This document shows positions 2,014 through 29,860 of a stretch of DNA of 43,110 nucleotides, piece after piece; position 1 is the first letter of the stretch, and the number at the start of each line of letters is the position of its first letter. The stretch is from Klebsormidium nitens (lineage: Eukaryota; Plantae; Klebsormidiophyceae): contig DF237580.1 of NCBI GenBank assembly GCA_000708835.1, positions 7,312 to 50,421 on the forward strand, written 5' to 3'. The notes below the pieces were generated by a model. The model searched no databases. It saw only the letters and a program-made list of their open reading frames with translations, and was not told the DNA's origin. The translations under genes were made by a program, and so were the position numbers.

Positions 2014-5000
2014 TCAGGATGTAGGGGTGAGGCCAACAACACCTGCAACAATTTCAAGTACAACAATCTATCAAACCTCTCGTTTGTAAATGACTTTATC
2101 GGAACTTTTTGTTTTCTTCACAATTCGCTTTGCAACAAACGTGAGCATAGCTTGCAAATCGACGGGATTCAGCAAAATACTTCAACGAGGATTGGAAACG
2201 ACTCGAAGAGGCAGGTCCAAAACCGGCATGCAGTAGGCACGACAAGACAGTCCTGACTCTCAAGAGGGTTGCAACCATTCACCTATTGAACTGCGACCAA
2301 ACGAGTGAATAGAAGCAGGCACACAATATCAACACCCTCCAATAGCTGCAGAGCCACTTCCAACAACCAAAAAAAGTAACGGCAGTGATTTCGCGACATT
2401 GTAAAGACTAGTCCGGCAGCGTAAAGATACAAGTTCATTGTAGGAGAGTGCTTCAGGCGCAGGAAGGTATAATTCTGCGATGCTGATGAATGGCAGCCAT
2501 CTCCGACAATCGCTCGACAGCAACTGAGACAGCTTGCCAGGCGCGCACAAAGAGATCCGCTGGTCAGTAGTAGCACTTTGGCATCGCCTGAAACTTGCTA
2601 AGCTTTCGCTGGTGAGCACGTGAGGTGCTTTACCGCCCCCCTTGTCATGCACTCAGGGGGCATCTCGTATTTGTTAATTAAGACTTTCTGACAGGTTCAG
2701 AAAGGCAGAATGAAGCTCCGCCCCTCTTAAGTGACAAGAGAAATAATGCGAGATGCTCACCGCATGCGAGCCTGCCTCCGGCGTTGCCTGTGGTGGAGCT
2801 CAGCTCGTGGCCGCCTGAAAAGAAACGAAAAATTCGAATATCATTTTACATCTCAAGGAGGACCGAGACTTGACACAAGCAGCTACTCGACACCGGAGAC
2901 AGAATCTGTGGCAGCCATATCAAGAGGAAACGACAAGCTCCAGTGTGGTCCCATTACTGGATACTTCAAAGTGACTTGTTGCGTTCGTTTGTTTTCGTTT
3001 TTGTTTTTGCTTCAACGTCGTGCAACGTTGCTCGGCTTTGCTTTGGAAGACGCCGTTGAAAGGCGTCAGAGTGATGGGCCCGTTCCGGGCTGCGAGATTC
3101 CTGAACAAGAACTAACGCTGCTTCTTTCTCACGAAGAAAAATGGTAACAGAGAGGGTGAACGCTCTTTAAGAGGATACGGTGCTATAGAATCTCAGCAGG
3201 ATCGTGTGCACTCACTCGGGTACGCACAGCCCTGAGAAAGTGGAAAAGAGACAGACGCAAACAAGGATACTATGTAAAGCAGACGGAATGTGGCTTACCC
3301 TTGCCGAGGTCGTCCTTGAGCTCGTGAATAACAAAGGCGCGACCAACGACGGAGTTGGGCCCGCTGAGGGGAATCTGCTTGTCGGTGATATTAATGGTAG
3401 CCACGCCTGATGGAGCGACAGCAGTGGGTGACATCAGTGTTTTGGTGACATTAGGTCAGCAAGGCGTGCACACCTGTCAAACTATACTCTGTGGGGCAAA
3501 CGAAGTGCGTATAGGCGTGTGCGCTGCAGGTTAAAAAATTGCCATGATCAACTGCCACCAAAAGGTTGTAACTTTCACTCGATGACCGTGGCAAAGCAAG
3601 GTGGATTTTTTGGGGCCTTCATAGAGCCCGACAATGGAGTAATGGACTGCTTGGTCTGACTTAACAGCAGAACAGGATCATACAACAAACAAAATAGACC
3701 ATAGACGGAGTACAGGTATCCGGAGGTGCACGTGCCTTATCAATCAGGCAAAGGCGAAAGTGCATGGGTTGCTCATTCCAGACAAACAATTGTACATGTT
3801 TGCAGAACAGAACCGCTTTTTATTTGCTTGTCAGATCTTGATAACCAGAACGAAAAACCAGCGTTCCGTTGCAGCGCTCCCGTGCAGCAAGTCTGCCAAG
3901 TGTCCCAGAATATTAGCCCACTGTGTATCCAGGTGTTGATTCAAGGTTGATTGCGAGGATGGTTTTAGAAAGAGACACACCTTACTCACAGACACACTGG
4001 AAGTACTCATTTGCACAGAAAGAAGCGAGATGTTAAGATAGTACAAAATACAGAAAGGCTTTCAAGCAAAATTGCAGTCTAGGCAGCAGTCCTGAAACTC
4101 AGAAGGAAAAAGAGCTTACAGACCAAGCCAAGCAATAAATGGCCCCGTCTGTAATCTGTAAATGTCCATTGCAGTTGTTGGAAGAAGATATGGTAAATCA
4201 CTACCTTGATCATCAGCAACAACATTGCCAAGATCCCCCGCGTGCCTCTCCTCATCGCCAGGGGCCCCGTGGGTCTTGCCGTTGGGGTTGAAGTGAGGAC
4301 CTGCAAAGAAAATAAATGCTTGTCATCTGAACATACACTGACAAGGTAAGTGGCCAGATGTGCTTTCTACTAAGAAGCTCCTAGTTGTTGATTCGCTGCT
4401 CAGGGGCCCTGGAGCATCGGCCCTGCAAGAAGCACAGTCTCGTTCTGGTGGCGAAGAAGAAACGGAGGGCGACCTTCTGATCCATGCTTCACTAATCTCG
4501 TGCTGACTACACCAACAAGTCAACTTATACAAGGTTGAAAGGCAGTATGCACCACCGAATGATGATTGAGAATGAGCAAAATTTGATTGTCAACAGATTG
4601 AGCTTCGCTGAACGATCGGTGTACGAAGCATGTGCTTCTTGTGCGAACGAGTACACGGTTCAGATCAATCCAGCCAAGCATTGTTGTTGCACTGGAGCAG
4701 ACACTCACCAGTCGAAATGCACCCGTTGGTGGTGTCGCCAAACTGGTGAAGGTGGAAGCCGTGCTCGCCAGGGGCCAGGCCAGTGATCTTCCCCGTCACC
4801 TTCACCGGGCCTGCAGATGTTTCAAAAAAATCCCCTTTGAAAAACCCCCTGATCAACCTACATGACGGCAGTGTTTTCAGTGCTTCCAGTATGCGGATGT
4901 TTATGTCTACTGCGGTTGACGAGCCTTGGAGATTTGACACCAGCATTAAACAGTAATACTTTCAAGGGTTTCCCTTCTTCTTTGTGTCTACAGCGTGCGC

Positions 5001-5982
5001 GCTGCTCTTTCTGGCCACTTCCTTATTCAAAAGACAAACAATGCAGCAAGCACCGTTTTCCAACAACAATGGGATCGGCGTTGATACATGTGTGAATAAT
5101 CTCTGCATAATGCTGAGGCTGCATGACCTTCCTGATCAAGATGGATTGGCCAGATTCTCATCCGCTCCAACTTCTCCCCTCCCCTTCCCCTCCCCCTCCC
5201 CTCCACCTCCCCGTACTGGGTCACATCAGTGACACAATTCGCCATACCGCTGTTTCATATGGCCCAACAGCTTGGTTCGAGGACAAAAGGGAATGCTGCC
5301 AGAAATTCTAGTCCATGGAAACAACAAAAACCTTTGGGGACAAAATTCTAAAGCGCCATCAAAGGCAAGCTGTTTCACATCCACCTGCTCAGCAAGACAT
5401 CGACCTGCTCAGCAGCAAGATATATTTCTGGAAGACCAGATTGCACATCGATCGACTCAACAGGAGAAAGCGTCCAGCACTAGTCTGCTTGATCAAAATG
5501 ATCCGTTCCCAGGATGAGACTATCCAGAAGCAGTCGGCAGCGCAATACTGCAGCTTATCCAAAAACTATTCTCACTCACTGTATCCAAACTGACAACATT
5601 GATCATCATATACAGAGAAATTTTGTTGAAAATGCAGCAAGGAAGGGTGGTATGGATGCATGCAGGCAATCTGTTATGCCACATTCCACTCCCGCATTCC
5701 AGCATTACCAGAAGCGCCAGCGTCTATTCACTCACCGTCATCCTCCTGCTCCAGCGTGATGGTCCCAGTGACCTTGCTCTCTCCCTTCAGCACTGCAACG
5801 GCCTTCTTCAATGCTGCGCTGATGACCAATTCCCTCCTGTAGGAAACCTTGTGAGCGGGCTTGGCGCAGATGGCATGCCCTAGGAAGGAGCTTTGCACCT
5901 GGGTGGAGGGCAGCACGGACTTGAATGAACTGCTCAGGGAGGCGCTGGCCAGGGCGGAGGAGGCGATGCAAGCGGAAGCCAT
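2014..5982 (-). CDS. CSD2: Chloroplast Cu/Zn superoxide dismutase (CSD2-like), 6 exons: 5982-5736, 4810-4709, 4300-4205, 3406-3299, 2814-2761, 2042-2014; 636 nt = 211 aa
   Basis: All junctions are GT-AG and keep frame. Ser/Ala-rich transit peptide ([19 protein letters not shown]...), then [85 protein letters not shown]. These are the canonical Cu/Zn-SOD metal-ligand motifs and the plastid-type C-terminus. Confidence 0.96.
5174..5212. repeat. C-rich low-complexity tract (G-run tract on the SOD sense strand) in SOD intron 1
   Basis: ctcccctccccttcccctccccctcccctccacctcccc seen directly; it has more than four G3+ runs on the minus strand. Confidence 0.7.
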
Positions 5983-21308: not shown

Positions 21309-21868
21309 GATGTCAGCAAACCCCTGAGCACTTCCTAGAAAGGCCTCCGGAACACACCCCGCAGCGCCTGCAAAATCAGCCCCAAACCTTGCCAACACAA
21401 ATCAACCCTCCACAGGGATTCTTGCCTCCACTTCCTGCCGCCAGGCTGCTCGTCCTGCCCACTCCAAACGTCCCTTCCTCTCGCGCCTGAGCAGCAGCAA
21501 TAGCTGAAACATGCTGCGGACGAACTAGAGTTGCGCGACCCCCGCCAGCACAGAAGCATGTCACAAGAAGGGAGCTCTGAATCGTCCGATCCGAACAATT
21601 CTTGTGGACGCCGTTGCCGTACGATATGCAAACATTTGGAGTGCCCTTGAGCTCCTCAATTTGTTGATGGGTTTTGTGCTGATCGGACGGCTCAAACCTA
21701 TGCCAATGGCGGCTGCACAGCCAGAGGGATCCCACATATGCACGGTCCTCCACACGCTGACTCGGACTCGAACGCTCCAAATTTTTGGAAAGTTTGTTCA
21801 TTTGTTGTTCAATTCAAAGCGCAGGGCGACATTCAAAGCGGTGCTGCATCCATTTCCCTTCTTTTCAA

Positions 21869-23539
21869 ATGGATCAGCTTTGTTCCAGGCCCAAGAGGCC
21901 AATGGAGACTGCGTTCGATGCTGCAGCAGGGCGGCGCTGTAGTAAGAGAGTGGCAACACTTCGTCGAAAAGCAGTAGATGTAGATGTTGTTCCAGATGAC
22001 AGCCGCGCCATCAACGTTGAACCAGGGATGAGTTCGGGTCCTGAAGAATGTGGAGGGATCCCAAAAGAGATGCAAGATATAAGGCCAGATGGGAAAGATA
22101 AGTGCCCTTGTTTTGCAGCTGCAAGCCGGGGGGACTTAGACGGCTTGCAACAGCTGCGACAGGGGACACCACCGCGCCGCTGGGGGGCCCTGAGCTGTGC
22201 GCTTGCGGCTTTGTGGGAGGGTCATTTGCAGGTCGCAGAATGGATATACGAGCAAGACGCGTCTGTTATTGAGGGAGTGTGCTTGCTGGCCGCCAAGTTG
22301 GGGAGGTTGAACTTGCTCCAATGGGCCCGGGCAAGAGACCCCGCGCCCCATTGGGACAAGGAACTGTGCAATCAGGTGGTGATTATGGCACTCAGAATGG
22401 GGCGGCCCGAGGTTGCGCAGTGGGGTGTGCTCCAGAATCCAGCTATGGAGTGCGCGACCACATGTCTGACTGCCGCTGTGACGGGCAACCTGGCGACGCT
22501 GCAATGGCTCAGGGGCCGGACTCCCCCCTGCCCTTGGGTTGGGGTCGATTGCGCTCTGGGGGCTCTGGAGAATGGGCATCTCGAGGTGGTGAAATGGGTG
22601 CGAGAGCAGGACCCCAGGGCAGAGAGAGACGTGTGCTGTGAGGCCGCGAGGCAGGGGAGGGTGGATCTGCTGAAATTGGCGAGGGCGCAGGAGCCTCCAT
22701 TTTGCTGGAACACTAGCACATGCCTCAATGCTGCGATGCAGGGGCACCTAGAGACGCTGCAATGGTTGAGAGGGCAAGAGCCCCCATGCCCTTGGATCCC
22801 CGCCGAGTGCGTGTACGTTGCGTCGATGACAGGACATGTTGAGGTCCTGAAATGGCTGACGGAACAAGCACCAGAGACCAGAAACTCTGTCTGTTGGGTG
22901 GCCGCTCGAGCGGGGAGGTTGGAGATTCTTCAATGGGCCAGGGCACAAAACCCGGCGTTTGCTTGGAGCGAAGCTGTGACCACCGCTGCTGCAGAGCGGG
23001 GACAGCTCGACGCTTTGCAGTGGTTGCGAAATCAAGTCCCGCCGTGCCCCTGGGACGTCGCCAAGTGTGCGGTCTGCGCTGCGAACAATGGGCATATTAG
23101 CAATGTGCAATGGCTGAAGGCTCAAGATCCCTCGGCGGCGACAGCATTGACGCGCAATCACTTGGAAGAGTGCGTGTGGATTGCTACTTACGCGTGGCCT
23201 CCATGCGAGGACGTCGTAGGCCTTCTCAAGGCAGAGCCGCACATTCAGATGAGCCGAAAATACCACGGTAAGATCGTCAAAGACGATTTTATCGAGATTT
23301 TCAGATTCTTGGCAGCGCGGGGGGGTTACAGGTACACTCCTCGGCCGGGGTTGAATGCAGGCCCTATGTGCGCAAGGTTAGCTCGACATTTGATGATTCC
23401 TTTGGATGCGAATTCACAGAAGAGGGCCAGCGAAGTGTTCAAGAGGCAGGTCGCATTGAGTTGTGGCCTTGGAAAGATGGGTGTCTTTGGCGATGTAGCA
23501 CAAAAGATAGGTGTCCTGGCCGGACTCCCCTGGATATAA
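21869..23539 (+). CDS. Intronless ankyrin-like repeat protein (AAxxGxLxxLQWxRxxxPPCPW type); the ORF opens at 21785, first ATGs at 21869 and 21902
   Basis: 584-codon open frame with about five ~45-aa units such as AAVTGNLATLQWLRGRTPPCPW...CALGALENGHLEVVKW and AAMQGHLETLQWLRGQEPPCPW...ASMTGHVEVLKW. Confidence 0.85.
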   Translation: MDQLCSRPKRPMETAFDAAAGRRCSKRVATLRRKAVDVDVVPDDSRAINVEPGMSSGPEECGGIPKEMQDIRPDGKDKCPCFAAASRGDLDGLQQLRQGTPPRRWGALSCALAALWEGHLQVAEWIYEQDASVIEGVCLLAAKLGRLNLLQWARARDPAPHWDKELCNQVVIMALRMGRPEVAQWGVLQNPAMECATTCLTAAVTGNLATLQWLRGRTPPCPWVGVDCALGALENGHLEVVKWVREQDPRAERDVCCEAARQGRVDLLKLARAQEPPFCWNTSTCLNAAMQGHLETLQWLRGQEPPCPWIPAECVYVASMTGHVEVLKWLTEQAPETRNSVCWVAARAGRLEILQWARAQNPAFAWSEAVTTAAAERGQLDALQWLRNQVPPCPWDVAKCAVCAANNGHISNVQWLKAQDPSAATALTRNHLEECVWIATYAWPPCEDVVGLLKAEPHIQMSRKYHGKIVKDDFIEIFRFLAARGGYRYTPRPGLNAGPMCARLARHLMIPLDANSQKRASEVFKRQVALSCGLGKMGVFGDVAQKIGVLAGLPWI

Positions 23540-24760: not shown

Positions 24761-27700
24761 TCAATGTTCTGAGTGCATTGTGCTATTCGGCGTGTCCGGG
24801 AACCCCGGGCTATACAGCCCGCTGCTCCCGCTGGTCATGCTGACGCTAGGACTCCCCATGTGGTTCCCATCCCCGGCCCCCTTTTGCCGGAGGGACGGCT
24901 TTTTCATCATGTTTGGAATACCCGCAACGGTAACGCCGGCCGACTGCCAGCCGACCGGGGGGGGAATGGATAGCTCCGGCGTTTTCATCTCGCGCAGCAG
25001 GAGGCGCAAAAAGGTGTACACTTTGGGGCGGTGCCGGTCCCACTCGCCCTTGTCGCCCTTGTGGAGGATGCGCAGCGCGGCCTCGTCGAACGGTTCGACG
25101 ACGCGCAGGAAGTCGGTGATGTGGGACTGGTTGGGGAAGTCGAGGTCCGCGAAGAGGTCCTGGGGAGGGAATGGCGGGCAATTGAGAGCGTGGTGACGTG
25201 GCAGTGTCCGAAGAGGGTCTTGGGTTAGTCAGCAGACGAACGTGGCAATATATGTGCAGGGCGTCAGGACAGAGATGTCGCATCTTGATGAAGCACCGTT
25301 CTGCATTTCGCCTGGCCCCCAAAGTCGGATCAGCAATTCTCCTCAGAGAGTAGGCGGGCTATGCAAATTTTACTTTAGGAGTACAGAAGACCTTTGCAGC
25401 CATTACGACTGATGTACTTTGCCAACGGTTCGCTCCTCCGAATCGTGCGGCGAACAGCGAACGGCTCTTACCAGGCACACCTTTTTGCGCCAGAAAGAGC
25501 GGCCAGAAACAAATCACGTCTCCTCAAGTAAGAAGCGGACAAGAAAGAAGAGCGGCTTCGACCAACGCTTGAAAGCAAGATTAATTCTAGCGCTGAATAG
25601 GTTCGAAAAGTGGAGACGCCCTGCATTCAAACGTGATGTCCTAAAGGAAAGAAAAGGTGGGTCAATGAAACTCACGTGGGCGACCGGGCCGATCCGCCAG
25701 AGCATCATGAAGCGCGTGAAGAAGTGCGTCCACTTCCGCCGGAACTCGTCCAGCTTGGCGGCGCGCTTGTGCTGCTCCTTCGTGTGCCCCAACAGCTGGG
25801 TGTCCTGCGCAGAAACAAGGCCTCGCTGAATAAGAGGATCTGGCCTTATGATTTCGGGCCATTCAATAGGGCCTTGTTCGGGCAGGTGTGGATAAAAAGC
25901 TGCGTGTGCTGCGCAGAAGTACAACCTCGCGGACTAAGGCGTTCTGACAGTCTTAAGCTCGACCTTTCCGTCGGGCCTTGTTCTGACAGGCGCCGGTAAG
26001 CAGGCTGGTTTCCAAGCAGCTTGTGCGAGGCTCGGAGTCTGGCAAACACTTTTGCACCGTGCTGGGCTTGAGGCGAAGTTTCTTGATCGCCTGTGCGTTG
26101 CGAAACTTGCCGTCTTACCGTCCTTGCGACCCCGATTCGCCGGCCTTAGCGAGAGAAAGGCCCGCCTTCCGGTCACGTAGTACTAAACAAGTTCCGAGAA
26201 ACCTCCACATTCCGGCAAAAGGACCCGGAAAAGATCTTCGAAAGAGACCATCTCCAGCCTGCCCTCACCTTCAAGCAGAGCGCCCACCGGTCGCTCGCGC
26301 CCGCCCCCTCGCCCGCCACGTAATCTTTCACCCCCCGGATCGCGTTCGCCATCTCGTAGCTCTGGTACTTTTGCACCAGCTCTGCGACTTCGCGCGCGAG
26401 CAGCAGCTTCTCCCCCAAAGTCAGCTCGGACTTGTCCGCGTCCTTGTGCGGACGGTCCGGCATGGACGCCGTCTCGAAGGGGAAGCCGTGCCGCTGCGCC
26501 GCCGCGTTGAAGGCGAAGCAGGAGACCCCCGCAGAGTCCCCGTGGCCAACTGCGAATGTAGAAGGTAGATCACGTTGGTCTGTGATTCTATGCAAGTAGC
26601 GACGCCAAATCACAAAATCCATTTTCGAGCAGGCGGGGGATCGTGCCGGTTCAAATATAGGGGAAGCAGGAGACCCCCGCAGAGTCGCCGTGGCCGAGTG
26701 CGCACATAGGGGGTTATTCACGTGAATTGGTGCTTCTGTCCAAGTAACCGAAAATAACGCCGGATCTTATATCACGATTCCGAGCAGGCGGGGTATCGTG
26801 CCGGTTGAGATTGGAGGGAAGCCATTCCTCGTGGCCGACTGTGCAAAGAAGAACGCGTGGCTAATGATGAATTGCAACTCTTTGCATCCTCAGGGTATTG
26901 ACGGCTTATGCTGTGACGCATCTCAAGGCAGAAGGCGGGTCGTGGGAGTTGGCCGACAGCGCCGCAGGAGGACCCCGCAAAGGCACTGGGTCCGACTTCA
27001 AACAGGCGCCAAAGAGCTTTGCGAACGGCACGCGCTTTCAGGCGCCGTTGGCGCCTGAAACTGGTCCGCGACGGAGGTTTAGACTCGAGTCGCTTGACGA
27101 GGACTGACTCATCCATGACCGCATTCGTAAGTCCTCAGTTTAGCAAGCGCACCCGGCGGACGACCTTGCAGACGTCAGCGCTCACGATCTCTTTCCTTGC
27201 TGACATCATCGCTTGTCTGTTGCTCACTCACCGCACACGGCGTACTTTATTCTGTTGGTGGACTCCTCCCCGATTGGCAACCCGCACTGTTCCATGTGCT
27301 TGTGGATGGCGGCGCTGAAGCGCTTCCAGTCCGCCCGCCACACCTGAACAGGAGCGGATCGAGTAAGAGACGGACGGAGATTCGAGCGGAACTGATGTGC
27401 TTGCGGATGGCGGCGCTGAAGCTCCTCCAGTCCGCCCGCCACTTTTGGAAACGAGCGGAACAGATCGGAACAGAGATACGGACGGAAGAGTTGACGGCAG
27501 TTCCGGTCAGTTGGGCCGGACAGTCAACCAGTAAGGATTGGACACGTGAAACTGGAACACCGAGCAGAATGAACTGGAACTCTCGAAATCAGAGACTGGC
27601 TTCCATTAGCAGATGAGGAGGTGAGCGCAGCTAGAAAGTGTAACCCACAGACAGCAATAGGTGCATAATTCTGATTGGCAGGGGCCTCGATACTTCCGAT

Positions 27701-29860
27701 TGGAGTTAACCCGCTGGACTGCACCGTGTAGGTGATCAAGAACGACATCGTCTCCTGTTCTGTCAAGCTCAGATCAACGTTTCATATCACATCCTACAAA
27801 TTCTTGGCAATAGATGCTGTGCGAAACAGCTTTGCCTGGAAAATCTCGACATATTTGGCAGCTGCTTGCTTCAGAAAGGCTTGACCTCCCTTACAACAAG
27901 CCCCGGGCAATTGCTTGGTCGCGAGAACCGACTTCCGCAGTTCCCCATTCAAGCTTCGAGAGTTCCATCAAAAAGTCGTTCGAGGACTTAAGCTACCGCT
28001 GAGCTCCACTCCTCCTGCCATCTCTTCGATGTGCGGCCGTTTCACGGCTTCACCTGAGCAATTTTCATTGAAAACCCGCTTCACGGATAGAACCAGATTT
28101 CCCAGCCAGATCCTTATGTAAGCTCACCTCGGAAGAAATTGCCTCCTTCCAGAACCTGCGCGCGTCCTCGTTCTGGATTTGACCAAGAATGTCAAACAGA
28201 CCGTACTTCGGGTCCATTCGTCCCAACACTCGGAAGTTGCTTAGGCTCTTTTCCAGGTCTAGCGCATGCCGGGTAAAGTGTTCTCTGCAAAGAGTTCAGG
28301 GTCAAGCTGTTACGGCCGAAAGGAAAGTCGAATCATCACCTGCTGCCGGTCAGCCAGCATCTGATCGTTGGGTCTATATCAGGGCACAGAGGTCCAAAGA
28401 TAATCGGTACTTGAGAAATTGGTCCACGAAATGGGCGCTAGAGGACTCAAGAATGTTTTAGGCAATGAACATTTGATCTGCCTCCTATTTGAAGAGTAAT
28501 GGAGCGGAATCGCAAAGTGACAAGGAATCACACGGTAGCTCCTCTTGGATACTGGCAAATACGAGCGGAGCCTTGCCATCAGGTAGAGTGCGTCAAAGCT
28601 TGAGCTTTGGCTGCGGACTCGACCTTAAATTAGACGCTTGACCTCTGTTTGTTTGCGGTGCGTTTCATGGTAAGGAGGTCAAGCTTTAGCATATCTGTGC
28701 TTACAGATGTCAAGATGAGATCTGTGAAAGCTTGCGGAGAAGAAGGTCCTCAGACGTGAAAATTGGAAGAGTTTTTGCTTTGCTTCACATGGTGCGGCAT
28801 CAAACAAGTCTATCGTTTGGGCGGCTTCTCAGCGTTGCTAATCGCAAATAAGGGCAGAACGCAGCAAGTGGCGCCTGCATCCTGACCTGTTTTTGCATCC
28901 TGGAACTTGCGTACAGATTGACAGCGGCAAGGCCAAATCTGAGGCAATTGACTAGATGGTGTGATCCGGTTGCTGATCAGATCCATATTTCCCAATGCTT
29001 TACCTGTACTCCGCAATGTTCATTGTGACCCATCTGTGGAAGTATGCTGCCCCATGGAGGCCCTTCAGCAGTTTCCGTTTCTCTATCAGCTTCCGCGCTT
29101 TCTCTCTCATTCCATGCATGTTCCTCCGGACAGGCTCCGAGGCAGTGGCCATCCCTGTCAATAGTCCAGGTGCAACTTGAAACGATGACTGAGCTCCTTA
29201 ATCGTTGATTCTTGACCACTTAATGCATCCTGCCTCAGCAACCAGGATAGGATTGAACAAACGGCAAGATCCAGCAAAGGCTATCTGACATCGAAGCTTA
29301 GACAATCAGATTGCATGGAGTAGAGGATAGGGCATGGGTTCTTCCATGGGACGAGAACTAAATCAAGGCTTCTGAACCTGCGGCCCAGCCAGATCAGCAA
29401 TCTTACATATGCTGCAGCAACTTGAGAGAAGGACATGTCTTCCTCAGCATCACATGCAAACTTCTCGCATTTCAGCTGGTTCAGCAGACTCTGGTCGGAT
29501 CAGCCTGCGCGGCTCCAACATCACTACAATTGGCCGAGATCTAAGCCAGGGTTTCAAAATTCTATGTCTACTATCAAAGCTGAGGCTTCCTCAGTGTCTC
29601 AGGGGGAGTATCAATGCCACTCCTGAATGCTTACCTGCCAGCCAATCATCCACCGCCTTGGACCGCTTCCCAGACTCCTCCTCTGCCTGCTTCATCCTGG
29701 CAAACTTTGCCAGCAGGCCATCTCCTATCCTACATTGCACCAGAGCGTCCTCCGCTTCTGAAGCGTAGTCTATACAGTGGCGCAGAAGGCTGATGCACTC
29801 TGCTGCTAATTCCCTCAAGGGGTCCCCTTCTGAGGCAACCACAAGCGCCTTCTCCCCCAT
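24761..29860 (-). CDS. 484-aa protein: putative four-helix bundle (MLKL/Cbl-N-like) + Cbl-like EF-hand + EDS1-type EP-like domain + disordered tail; 7 exons: 29860-29635, 29154-29004, 28284-28128, 27343-27232, 26549-26269, 25804-25676, 25159-24761
   Basis: All six introns are GT-AG, phases are 1,2,0,1,0,0, and the total of 1455 nt is stop-free; good gccATGg context. Domain calls by eye: EDARRFWKEAISSEVWRADWKRFSAAIH...VSCFAFN...GFPF resembles Cbl EF-hand [26 protein letters not shown]...ISVFEFD...FQPW; DLDF...DFLRVVEPFDEA...GEWDRHRPKVY resembles EDS1 DIDW...YRRLVEPLDIA...GPYMKRGRPTRY. The confidence score is for the gene model; domain identity is less certain. Confidence 0.88.
25195..27446 (-). 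repeat. Decayed acceptor-side exon copies upstream of exons 4, 5, 6 and 7 of the 24761-29860 gene
   Basis: Exon 7 echo at ~25195-25226; exon 6 echo agctgcgtgtgctgcgcagaa at 25898 (offset 104); exon 5 echoes at ~26660-26700, ~26770-26845 and ~26945-26990 (offsets 148, 141, ~118); exon 4 echo at ~27394-27446 (offset 101). Confidence 0.8.

Follow-up and report, generated by a model that had tools for sequence, protein, structure and literature searches.

The EP domain (PF18117) of EDS1, PAD4 and SAG101 serves seed plants as the receptor of TIR-made pRib-AMP/ADP and ADPr-ATP. Published accounts regard it as exclusive to the EDS1 family and as occurring in seed plants alone, and they leave open how organisms that lack EDS1 decode TIR signals (PMC9806590; bioRxiv 572826). 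The residues that contact pRib-ADP are D469, N472, Y473 and R493 in EDS1, and R314, K380 and R425 in PAD4 (10.1101/2022.04.01.486681). HET, a remote relative of TIR, induces cell death (PMC10890737). In our searches of the literature, no EP-like domain had been reported outside the EDS1 family. The other described system that concerns us is the tyrosine-kinase-binding (TKB) module of Cbl, which recognises phosphotyrosine and consists of a four-helix bundle (4H; Cbl_N), an EF-hand-like pair (Cbl_N2) and an SH2 domain (Cbl_N3). Here we describe a gene of the freshwater streptophyte alga Klebsormidium nitens whose product appears to combine features of both systems.

The gene lies in a 43,110-nucleotide stretch of DNA, analysed as a whole and called the window below. 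Its seven exons on the minus strand, joined by GT-AG introns, encode a product of 484 aa. Spliced contigs from four runs in four studies reproduce all six junctions, and a single contig of 2462 nt covers all six of them; the gene is therefore genuine, its exon model is right, and it is transcribed. Both the gene and the peptide segments quoted in a preliminary description of this DNA were present where that description had placed them. The features are as follows.

24761..29860, minus strand: whole gene, seven exons, stop codon at 24761-24763 (exon model and spliced contigs)
29860-29635, 29154-29004, 28284-28128, 27343-27232, 26549-26269, 25804-25676 and 25159-24761, minus strand: exons 1-7 (GT-AG model)
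28167..29860, minus strand: predicted N-terminal four-helix bundle, codons 1-165, exons 1-3 with the introns between (P0006 alignment and model)
26455..28166, minus strand: EF-hand-like pair of Cbl_N2 type, probably not Ca2+-binding, codons 166-247, end of exon 3 to start of exon 5 (hallmark residues and profiles)
24995..26454, minus strand: predicted EP-like all-helical domain, codons 248-407, exons 5-7 (P0001 homology and fold matches)
24764..24994, minus strand: Pro/Gly/Ser-rich tail, codons 408-484, without counterpart in most aligned homologues
27395..27459, minus strand: degenerate copy of the exon 4 acceptor and 5' part, within intron 3 (direct repeat D2)
26659..26746, minus strand: degenerate copy of the exon 5 acceptor and 5' part, within intron 4 (direct repeat D1)

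The two degenerate copies belong to direct repeats, namely, D2 (27395-27459 versus 27294-27358, 86% identity), where tblastn gives a weak second match at the exon 4 copy, and D1 (26659-26746 versus 26511-26598, 77% identity).

Using exon 7 as the query against 1.84 billion representatives, we obtained 10 matches (best E-value 8e-11), later widened to a family of about 30 proteins that come mostly from Mucorales fungi, plus this alga and a few other eukaryotes. In blastp, residues 18-407 of the window protein align to residues 5-391 of the homologue P0006 (E-value 2e-31), and the homologue P0001 is 33% identical to the window protein across 258 aa. The phylogenetic tree places the window protein in a TIR-linked, non-fungal clade (support 98/96). 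None of the 24,736 Pfam families is assigned to any part of this family at the gathering threshold. The gene product stands alone as a member of a family of eukaryotic proteins that has not been described before.

Structures were predicted for P0006 and P0001, and the domains were transferred from them to the window protein by homology. Both AlphaFold models are confident (pLDDT 88 and 91), that of the P0001 domain having a pLDDT of 90.9 and a pTM of 0.85; however, the relative packing of the domains is not given by the full-length homologue model, since its pTM is only 0.48. By this transfer, the four-helix bundle of the window protein would occupy residues ~15-165; the EF-like pair would follow at ~166-247 and the EP-like domain at 248-407, and residues 408-484 would form a low-complexity tail that is presumably disordered. 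The homologue models thus support a three-part architecture, with a four-helix bundle, an EF-hand-like pair and a helical domain of 160 aa. The layout in the preliminary description (helices at ~14-145, an EF-like segment 'FW..W..F..VS.F.F' and an EP-like C-terminus) agrees with these models and alignments, but its proposals of Ca2+ sensing and of a membrane-perturbing bundle find no support, for reasons given below.

When the model of the P0001 domain was aligned by VIA to 48,161 PDB chains, the best matches were 8zf0_C (Z 13.5 across 149 aa), the PAD4 chain 7xey_B (12.3) and the EDS1 chain 4nfu_A (10.4), while the next fold scored 6.5. The top 11 matches in Foldseek were all EDS1-family chains as well (probability 0.97-1.0, TM 0.51-0.59), and the full-length homologue model gives the same EP matches. 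EDS1-family chains are the only strong PDB matches of this domain, and the match is specific in two independent aligners. The aligned part, ~150 residues with 14-15% identity, covers roughly the first half of EP (EDS1 ~362-511, PAD4 ~293-437). These model-based comparisons support an EP-like all-helical fold that is specific to the EDS1 family. At the sequence level, Pfam EDS1_EP is matched by one member, P0025, in which residues 144-242 align to positions 29-125 of the 211 in the profile with 14.9 bits (E-value 0.021; gathering score 23.1). No fragment of the window matches PF18117 at E<=1, and our HMM and phmmer searches of the PDB sequences returned no EDS1-family chain and no significant link to EDS1, PAD4 or SAG101. 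The weak Pfam signals of the family, all below the gathering thresholds, fall on the same two of the 24,736 families, Cbl_N2 (five members) and EDS1_EP (P0025). We infer that the EP-like domain is homologous, rather than analogous, to EP. It shares with the EDS1-family domain the all-helical fold, the spacing of the conserved motif described next, and a physical link to TIR in relatives of the algal protein, but it is shorter (~160 versus ~240 aa), it occurs in an alga, Mucorales fungi and a few other eukaryotes rather than in seed plants, and it is not joined to a class-3-lipase-like alpha/beta-hydrolase domain. Indeed, no lipase family was matched, and the N-terminal part consists of the helical bundle and the EF-like pair.

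The matched half of EP includes every pRib-ADP contact given in 10.1101/2022.04.01.486681. The most conserved motif of the family, D-x-A-N-[Y/F], has a spacing identical to that of D469/N472/Y473 in EDS1, and falls within ~2 residues of them as judged from structural alignment ranges rather than from residue-level superposition. The window protein keeps the aspartate (D377) but has A380 and L381 where EDS1 has N472 and Y473, and deviates at near-invariant family residues of the putative pocket, with N362 for G, Q363 for K, H365 for R and A380 for N.

The preliminary description had called for a check of co-occurrence with TIR genes, and relatives do show such co-occurrence, as fusions and as neighbouring genes. 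A single ORF of 587 aa joins TIR to an EP-like domain with 37% identity to the window protein (E-value 5e-19); a second, TIR-X-EP paralogue adjoins it, and the paralogue recurs on a 28-kb eukaryotic contig. The family member P0004 has a TIR gene of the CAP12/PycTIR type at a distance of 1.3 kb; this gene matches STING weakly and is possibly a TIR-STING. P0007 is annotated as a HET fusion and sits inside a HET gene cluster, the fusion hinging on one putative intron of 64 bp. In these respects the family resembles the TIR-effector fusions known from defence in bacteria and eukaryotes on the one hand, and fungal HET/NLR-type allorecognition loci on the other. Since the EP-like domain is also found attached to TIR without the 4H/EF part, it is an independent module. 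We detected no NOD/NB-ARC or repeat domain in the family, and no TIR or HET gene in the 43-kb window, where the gene stands alone.

We give about an even chance to the reading that the window protein belongs to an undescribed family in which a Cbl-like 4H/EF part is combined with an EP-like recognition module of a TIR/HET-type pathway. Taken jointly, the bundle and the degenerate EF-hand pair would look like the Cbl TKB module without its last third, and at the position of the Cbl SH2 a helical domain of ~160 aa would adopt the fold that the EDS1/PAD4 EP has in its N-terminal half. This domain may act as the recognition module of the pathway. It would bind either the TIR/HET protein directly or a product derived from NAD, perhaps as a dimer in the manner of EDS1-PAD4, and the role of scaffold or output part would fall to the 4H/EF module. 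An immune or cell-death role, and ligand binding by the EP-like domain, would follow from this reading.

A rather unlikely alternative is that the 4H/EF/EP-like unit is a Cbl-TKB-like adaptor that reads a peptide or a modified protein, with the EP-like domain as a binding or dimerisation surface and no nucleotide messenger. The likeness to Cbl on which it draws, and which the reading favoured above shares, is seen in several searches. Cbl TKB chains dominate the Foldseek list for the full model (220-275 aligned columns across 4H and EF, probability up to 0.97), making Cbl its top fold family; 32 of the 34 PDB matches of the family EF-region profile are Cbl TKB chains (E-value 0.02-0.09); and Cbl_N2 (PF02761) is the Pfam family matched at the EF position, by five members that score 14.2-17.9 bits where the cut-off is 22 (E-value 0.005-0.07). 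Cbl is thus almost the sole sequence family matched, although every Cbl match is sub-threshold. The bundle is followed by the EF-hand-like pair in the same order as in Cbl, the signature 'FW..fG....W..F ... C....vs.F.F' is common to both, and the window protein retains the family hallmarks W184, F187, C215 and G237-F238-P239. The suggestion in the preliminary description that the protein resembles a Cbl TKB whose SH2 is replaced by EP is borne out in this sense: the EF segment matches, weakly, only Cbl_N2 and Cbl TKB, and the EP-like fold is specific. Unlike Cbl, this family has an EP-like domain in place of Cbl_N3, and neither a linker nor a RING. The adaptor would also fit the absence of several conserved putative pocket residues from the window protein, and the fact that plant EP domains contact helper NLRs too, such complexes being named in the titles of PDB entries 8zf0 and 8zw9. 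However, the EP-like domain joined to TIR without 4H/EF, the most conserved motif sharing the spacing of the EDS1 ligand-contact residues, and the sub-threshold scores of the Cbl matches all argue against the adaptor.

The EF-hand-like pair itself is probably degenerate and not Ca2+-binding. In the ESM Atlas, model residues 143-215 match an EF-hand-pair cluster, while no EF-hand family of Pfam is matched by the window fragments or the family members. In the profile alignment to the PDB, the Glu of the VFEF segment of Cbl, which we take to be a Ca2+-coordinating residue, is replaced by Gly in the family consensus and by Ala in the window protein, and Ca2+ sensing is therefore unsupported.

The preliminary description had favoured a sensor and a killer in one polypeptide, in which the bundle is a membrane executioner of the MLKL/RPW8/CC/HeLo type, restrained by the EF/EP part and freed by a nucleotide or Ca2+; such gating could at most be conjectured, and we consider the whole scheme improbable. 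The MLKL N-terminal domain, plant CC, RPW8-like CC-R and fungal HeLo-like domains are four-helix bundles of similar size from immune and cell-death proteins, and four long helices occupy residues 2-138 of the P0006 model; the alignment of the first two helices of the window protein is uncertain. The modelled bundle superposes on Rx-CC (Z 12-13), MLKL (10-11), the NRG1.1 CC-R (9.8), NRC2 and the MLA13 CC, as well as, in the ESM Atlas, on an Ascomycota 'fungal N-terminal domain' cluster and on DUF7792-bearing plant kinases, and an immune setting would suit the EP-like domain and the TIR/HET links. However, Z scores of 10-13 are expected for any helical bundle and are equalled by unrelated ones, including IncA (13, as for Rx-CC) and designed bundles, and also by the 4H of c-Cbl, Cbl-b, Cbl-c and a choanoflagellate Cbl (11-11.5 across 113-116 aa, rmsd ~3). 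Rx-CC, IncA, MLKL, NRG1 CC-R and Cbl 4H score so alike on the model that no closest kin of the bundle can be singled out, and the RPW8, MLKL and Cbl_N profiles match no family member even at E<=10, in keeping with the lack of sequence signal to any of the immune bundles. In addition, the EF loop has no acidic residue aligned to the Glu of the Cbl VFEF; the TIR and HET fusions already hold another putative effector, the TIR fusions lacking the bundle altogether; and a scaffold role is favoured because an EF-hand of Cbl_N2 type comes after the bundle, as in Cbl.

Equally improbable, in our view, is that the helical folds are convergent, the family has a housekeeping function and its TIR/HET neighbours are coincidental: our sequence searches connect the family to neither EDS1 nor Cbl at a significant level, the context comes from a handful of loci, middling Z scores are common among helical domains and ESM Atlas searches returned nothing, but the gap in Z is confined to one family among the 48,161 chains, the Foldseek result, the EDS1_EP match (a family predicted beforehand) and the motif spacing all agree with it, and the TIR/HET associations are three and independent, one of them inside a single ORF.

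Resting on homologue models and a few genomic contexts, the link of the EP-like domain to TIR/HET signalling is a strong lead that stops short of proving a pathway. Because one ORF combines it with TIR, and because it is also tied to HET, the domain is a candidate for EDS1-independent TIR/HET signalling, and its presence in a streptophyte alga and early-diverging fungi makes it a candidate evolutionary source of the receptor half of EDS1. The 4H/EF part is, as far as we have searched, the first Cbl-TKB-like module of this kind found outside Cbl proteins. We put forward tentatively, as a possibility short of probable, that EP was no new invention of seed plants but goes back to an older module of eukaryotes, already coupled to TIR/HET enzymes, and that the algal protein is a receptor or adaptor of pre-EDS1 kind through which messengers derived from NAD are read. 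If so, the older module would survive in the algal Cbl-like 4H/EF plus EP protein, in Mucorales and as TIR-EP fusions, and these fusions would be the Rosetta stone for the signalling link from TIR to EDS1.

The DNA of the window is eukaryotic, with a GC content of about 50%. We assembled the gene from reading-frame fragments on the minus strand, from 29860 to 24761, obtaining seven exons with GT-AG borders and a 484-aa product (hereafter the window protein), which is the same seven-exon model that the preliminary description had put forward. Twenty public runs contain the window stretch, many of them carrying about 28% of its words, which equals the exonic share. All six splice junctions occur at exactly the predicted positions in contigs from four runs of four studies, and one 2462-nt contig spans all six of them. 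This is a genuine gene that is expressed and spliced. The features of the window are as follows.

24761-29860, minus strand: gene of seven exons encoding the window protein
27395-27459, intron 3: degenerate tandem copy of the acceptor site and 5' part of the next exon
26659-26746, and also 26757-26822, intron 4: degenerate tandem copies of the acceptor site and 5' part of the next exon
25326-25704, 25777-26137 and 26538-27223 (run X1): low-depth contigs covering introns
21785-23539, plus strand: intron-less ORF of 584 aa with ankyrin repeats (Ank_4, E 5e-18)

The copies in introns 3 and 4 are pseudo-exon duplications within the gene, 73-86% identical to their originals, and were used by no spliced contig from the four runs of the four studies. 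The low-depth intron-covering contigs, found in runs with 0.5-0.63 of the words, represent either unspliced RNA or DNA; a loose end of 255 nt is seen at 26413 in one contig, and no alternative splice form is shown. The ankyrin ORF is composed of units of the 'LQWLR..PPCPW' type and is convergent with the 3' end of the gene, 1.2 kb apart. A second copy of the gene or a TIR gene inside the 43-kb window was ruled out, as none is present.

A Pfam scan of the raw ORF fragments of the window returned no match, and a search of exon 7 against 1.84 billion representative proteins gave ten matches only (best E 8e-11). Further searches extended the family to about 30 proteins, the majority being 390-400-aa hypothetical proteins from the Mucorales genera Absidia, Cunninghamella, Apophysomyces, Circinella, Zychaea, Phascolomyces, Halteromyces and Fennellomyces, while a few members stem from metagenomes or read assemblies. 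The window protein itself was found in neither of the two protein libraries searched. By local blastp, its residues 18-407 align with residues 5-391 of the homologue P0006 (E 2e-31), and its closest homologue is P0001 (33% identity over 258 aa). Since the alignment to P0006 is near full length, the whole architecture is shared. A tree of the C-terminal domain places a fungal clade apart from a five-member group (98/96 support) consisting of the window protein, the homologues P0004, P0005 and P0010, and an ORF of the relatives' locus L002; a further member of the non-fungal group with all three parts is found at locus L005. That the family is new is a solid conclusion.

The structural models were folded from the homologues P0006 and P0001, not from the window protein. 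The P0006 model (33-row alignment; mean pLDDT 87.8) comprises four long helices at residues 2-138, two helix-loop-helix units at 142-216 and a helical domain at 237-391, and its pTM of 0.48 leaves the packing of these domains open. The C-terminal domain of P0001 was modeled alone with a pLDDT of 90.9 and a pTM of 0.85. When this domain was exhaustively aligned to 48,161 PDB representatives, the top three were all of the EDS1 family, namely, 8zf0_C (Z 13.5, 149 residues, rmsd 3.1), PAD4 (7xey_B, Z 12.3) and EDS1 (4nfu_A, Z 10.4), and the next fold scored Z 6.5. Independently of this, the first eleven chains returned by Foldseek for this domain are EDS1 or PAD4 (probability 0.97-1.0, TM 0.51-0.59), against TM values below 0.3 for unrelated rows, and residues 235-391 of the full-length P0006 model have the same EDS1-family matches. 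Judged by published domain limits (bioRxiv 572826), the matched ranges, about 362-511 in EDS1 and 293-437 in PAD4, cover the N-terminal half of the EP domain, and all the reported pRib-ADP contacts (10.1101/2022.04.01.486681) fall inside them. In a Pfam scan of the 33 alignment members at E<=10, EDS1_EP was matched once, by the homologue P0025 (E 0.021, profile positions 29-125 of 211). PDB sequence searches with exon 7, the full profile, the profile of the C-terminal domain and P0025 retrieved no EDS1, PAD4 or SAG101 chain, and the ESM Atlas, searched by features and by shape, gave no match to the domain. Taken on these models, we consider it solid that the last of the three parts is specifically EP-like. 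Membership of the EDS1 family proper was ruled out, because the lipase domain is absent and the Pfam score is sub-threshold.

The best fit to the data is an alternative raised in the preliminary description, a unit like the Cbl TKB in which an EP domain takes the place of SH2. The Foldseek list for the full model is led by TKB structures of Cbl, Cbl-b, Cbl-c and a choanoflagellate Cbl, with 220-275 aligned columns, probabilities up to 0.97 and E about 0.1. Moreover, the most frequent Pfam family in the same scan at E<=10 is Cbl_N2, matched in its expected place by five of the 33 members (E 0.005-0.07); the Cbl_N2 and EDS1_EP matches all lie below gathering scores, and these are precisely the two families, among 24,736, that the fold searches singled out. 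When a profile of the EF-hand-like region was compared with all PDB sequences, 32 of the 34 matches were Cbl TKB chains (E 0.02-0.09), the alignment resting on 'FW..fG...W..F' and 'C...vs.F.F'; in the ESM Atlas, model residues 143-215 match an EF-hand-pair cluster. As for the four-helix bundle, its matches in the ESM Atlas are to a cluster of fungal N-terminal domains and to plant kinases with DUF7792, and rigid alignment of the bundle alone scored about 13 for Rx-CC and IncA, 11-11.5 for the Cbl four-helix bundle, 10-11 for MLKL and 9.8 for NRG1 CC-R; these model-based scores do not discriminate among bundle families and lie in the generic helical-bundle range of the tool. The EF segment had also been suggested to sense Ca2+, which is unlikely because the Glu of Cbl 'VFEF', which we take to be the Ca2+-coordinating position 12, is matched in the alignment by a Gly of the family consensus and by Ala in the window protein; a canonical Ca2+ EF-hand was rejected on the same alignment of the region to the Cbl TKB. 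A pore-forming role of the bundle and its gating by Ca2+, as in the one-polypeptide cell-death module originally favored, are both without support.

Several relatives of this Cbl-TKB-like protein with an EP-like end are linked to TIR or HET genes, at the following positions.

L002 1650-3413, minus strand, and 3651-5491, plus strand: head-to-head TIR-X-EP-like paralogues
L001 1388-2197, 7168-8460 and 10146-11204: CAP12/PycTIR-type TIR gene and two weakly nucleotidyltransferase/cyclase-like genes
L004 725-2662, 3215-5169, 10001-13504, 14324-15637 and 23072-23504: HET cluster of Absidia cylindrospora

At L002, a single uninterrupted 587-aa ORF carries a TIR domain and an EP-like domain at its end, the latter sharing 37% identity with the window protein over 180 aa (E 5e-19). 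It is divergently adjoined by a second copy, in which a TIR ORF (TIR_2, E 1e-13) overlaps P0010, a frame change splitting the two. Both paralogues open with a hydrophobic, Arg-rich stretch that is alike in the two and could serve for targeting or anchoring, and their middle region of about 150 aa has no Pfam match. The paired arrangement is seen again on a 28-kb contig (L003), judged to be eukaryotic since it carries a mitochondrial-carrier gene and its gene calls are fragmented. The four-helix and EF-like module is absent from these TIR fusions. P0004, carried by L001, has the same full architecture as the window protein and lies 1.3 kb from the CAP12/PycTIR-type TIR gene (E 9e-9), which has a weak prokaryotic-STING match, with the two genes of weak nucleotidyltransferase/cyclase (CBASS-cyclase-like) matches lying on either side. 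This neighborhood looks like a defense island; L001 is a metagenome scaffold of 60% GC. The annotation of P0007 in Absidia cylindrospora joins a family part to HET (E 5e-14), a join that hinges on a predicted 64-bp intron without which the two ORFs would overlap. P0007 lies in a 23-kb cluster that contains, besides P0007 itself, three more HET genes (four HET-domain genes in all) and another family member, P0023.

The strongest motifs of the family are R-R...F-Y-Q-R-Y-M-x-W-R-x-G, D-F-P-G-K-x-R, P-L-D-x-A-N-[Y/F] and P-K-V-Y-x-F. The D/N/Y spacing in the third is that of EDS1 D469/N472/Y473, and the motif falls within about two residues of these when counted from the structural-alignment ends, an agreement that is suggestive, being based on spacing and such counting and not on residue-level superposition.

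The gene, its expression and its three-part architecture are solid. No sequence link to EP or to Cbl rises above threshold, and the genomic context comes from few loci. Published accounts (PMC9806590; bioRxiv 572826) restrict the EP domain to the EDS1 family and to seed plants, and in the literature we found no report of EP-like domains outside them. Because the EP-like domain is recurrently coupled physically to TIR and HET, its most likely function would be to act in TIR-type signaling, a reading to which we give about even chances; nucleotide binding would be a narrower claim and a less certain one. Most hallmarks of the family are retained by the window protein, namely W184, F187, C215, GFP 237-239, W304, D328, R331, R332, R340, W345, D359, P361, P375, D377, A379, W392, P397, V399, Y400 and F402; it deviates at N362, Q363, H365 and A380, where 81-97% of the family have G, K, R and N. 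Since these motif residues are altered, the protein of the alga could be a divergent member of the family or one of a partner type.
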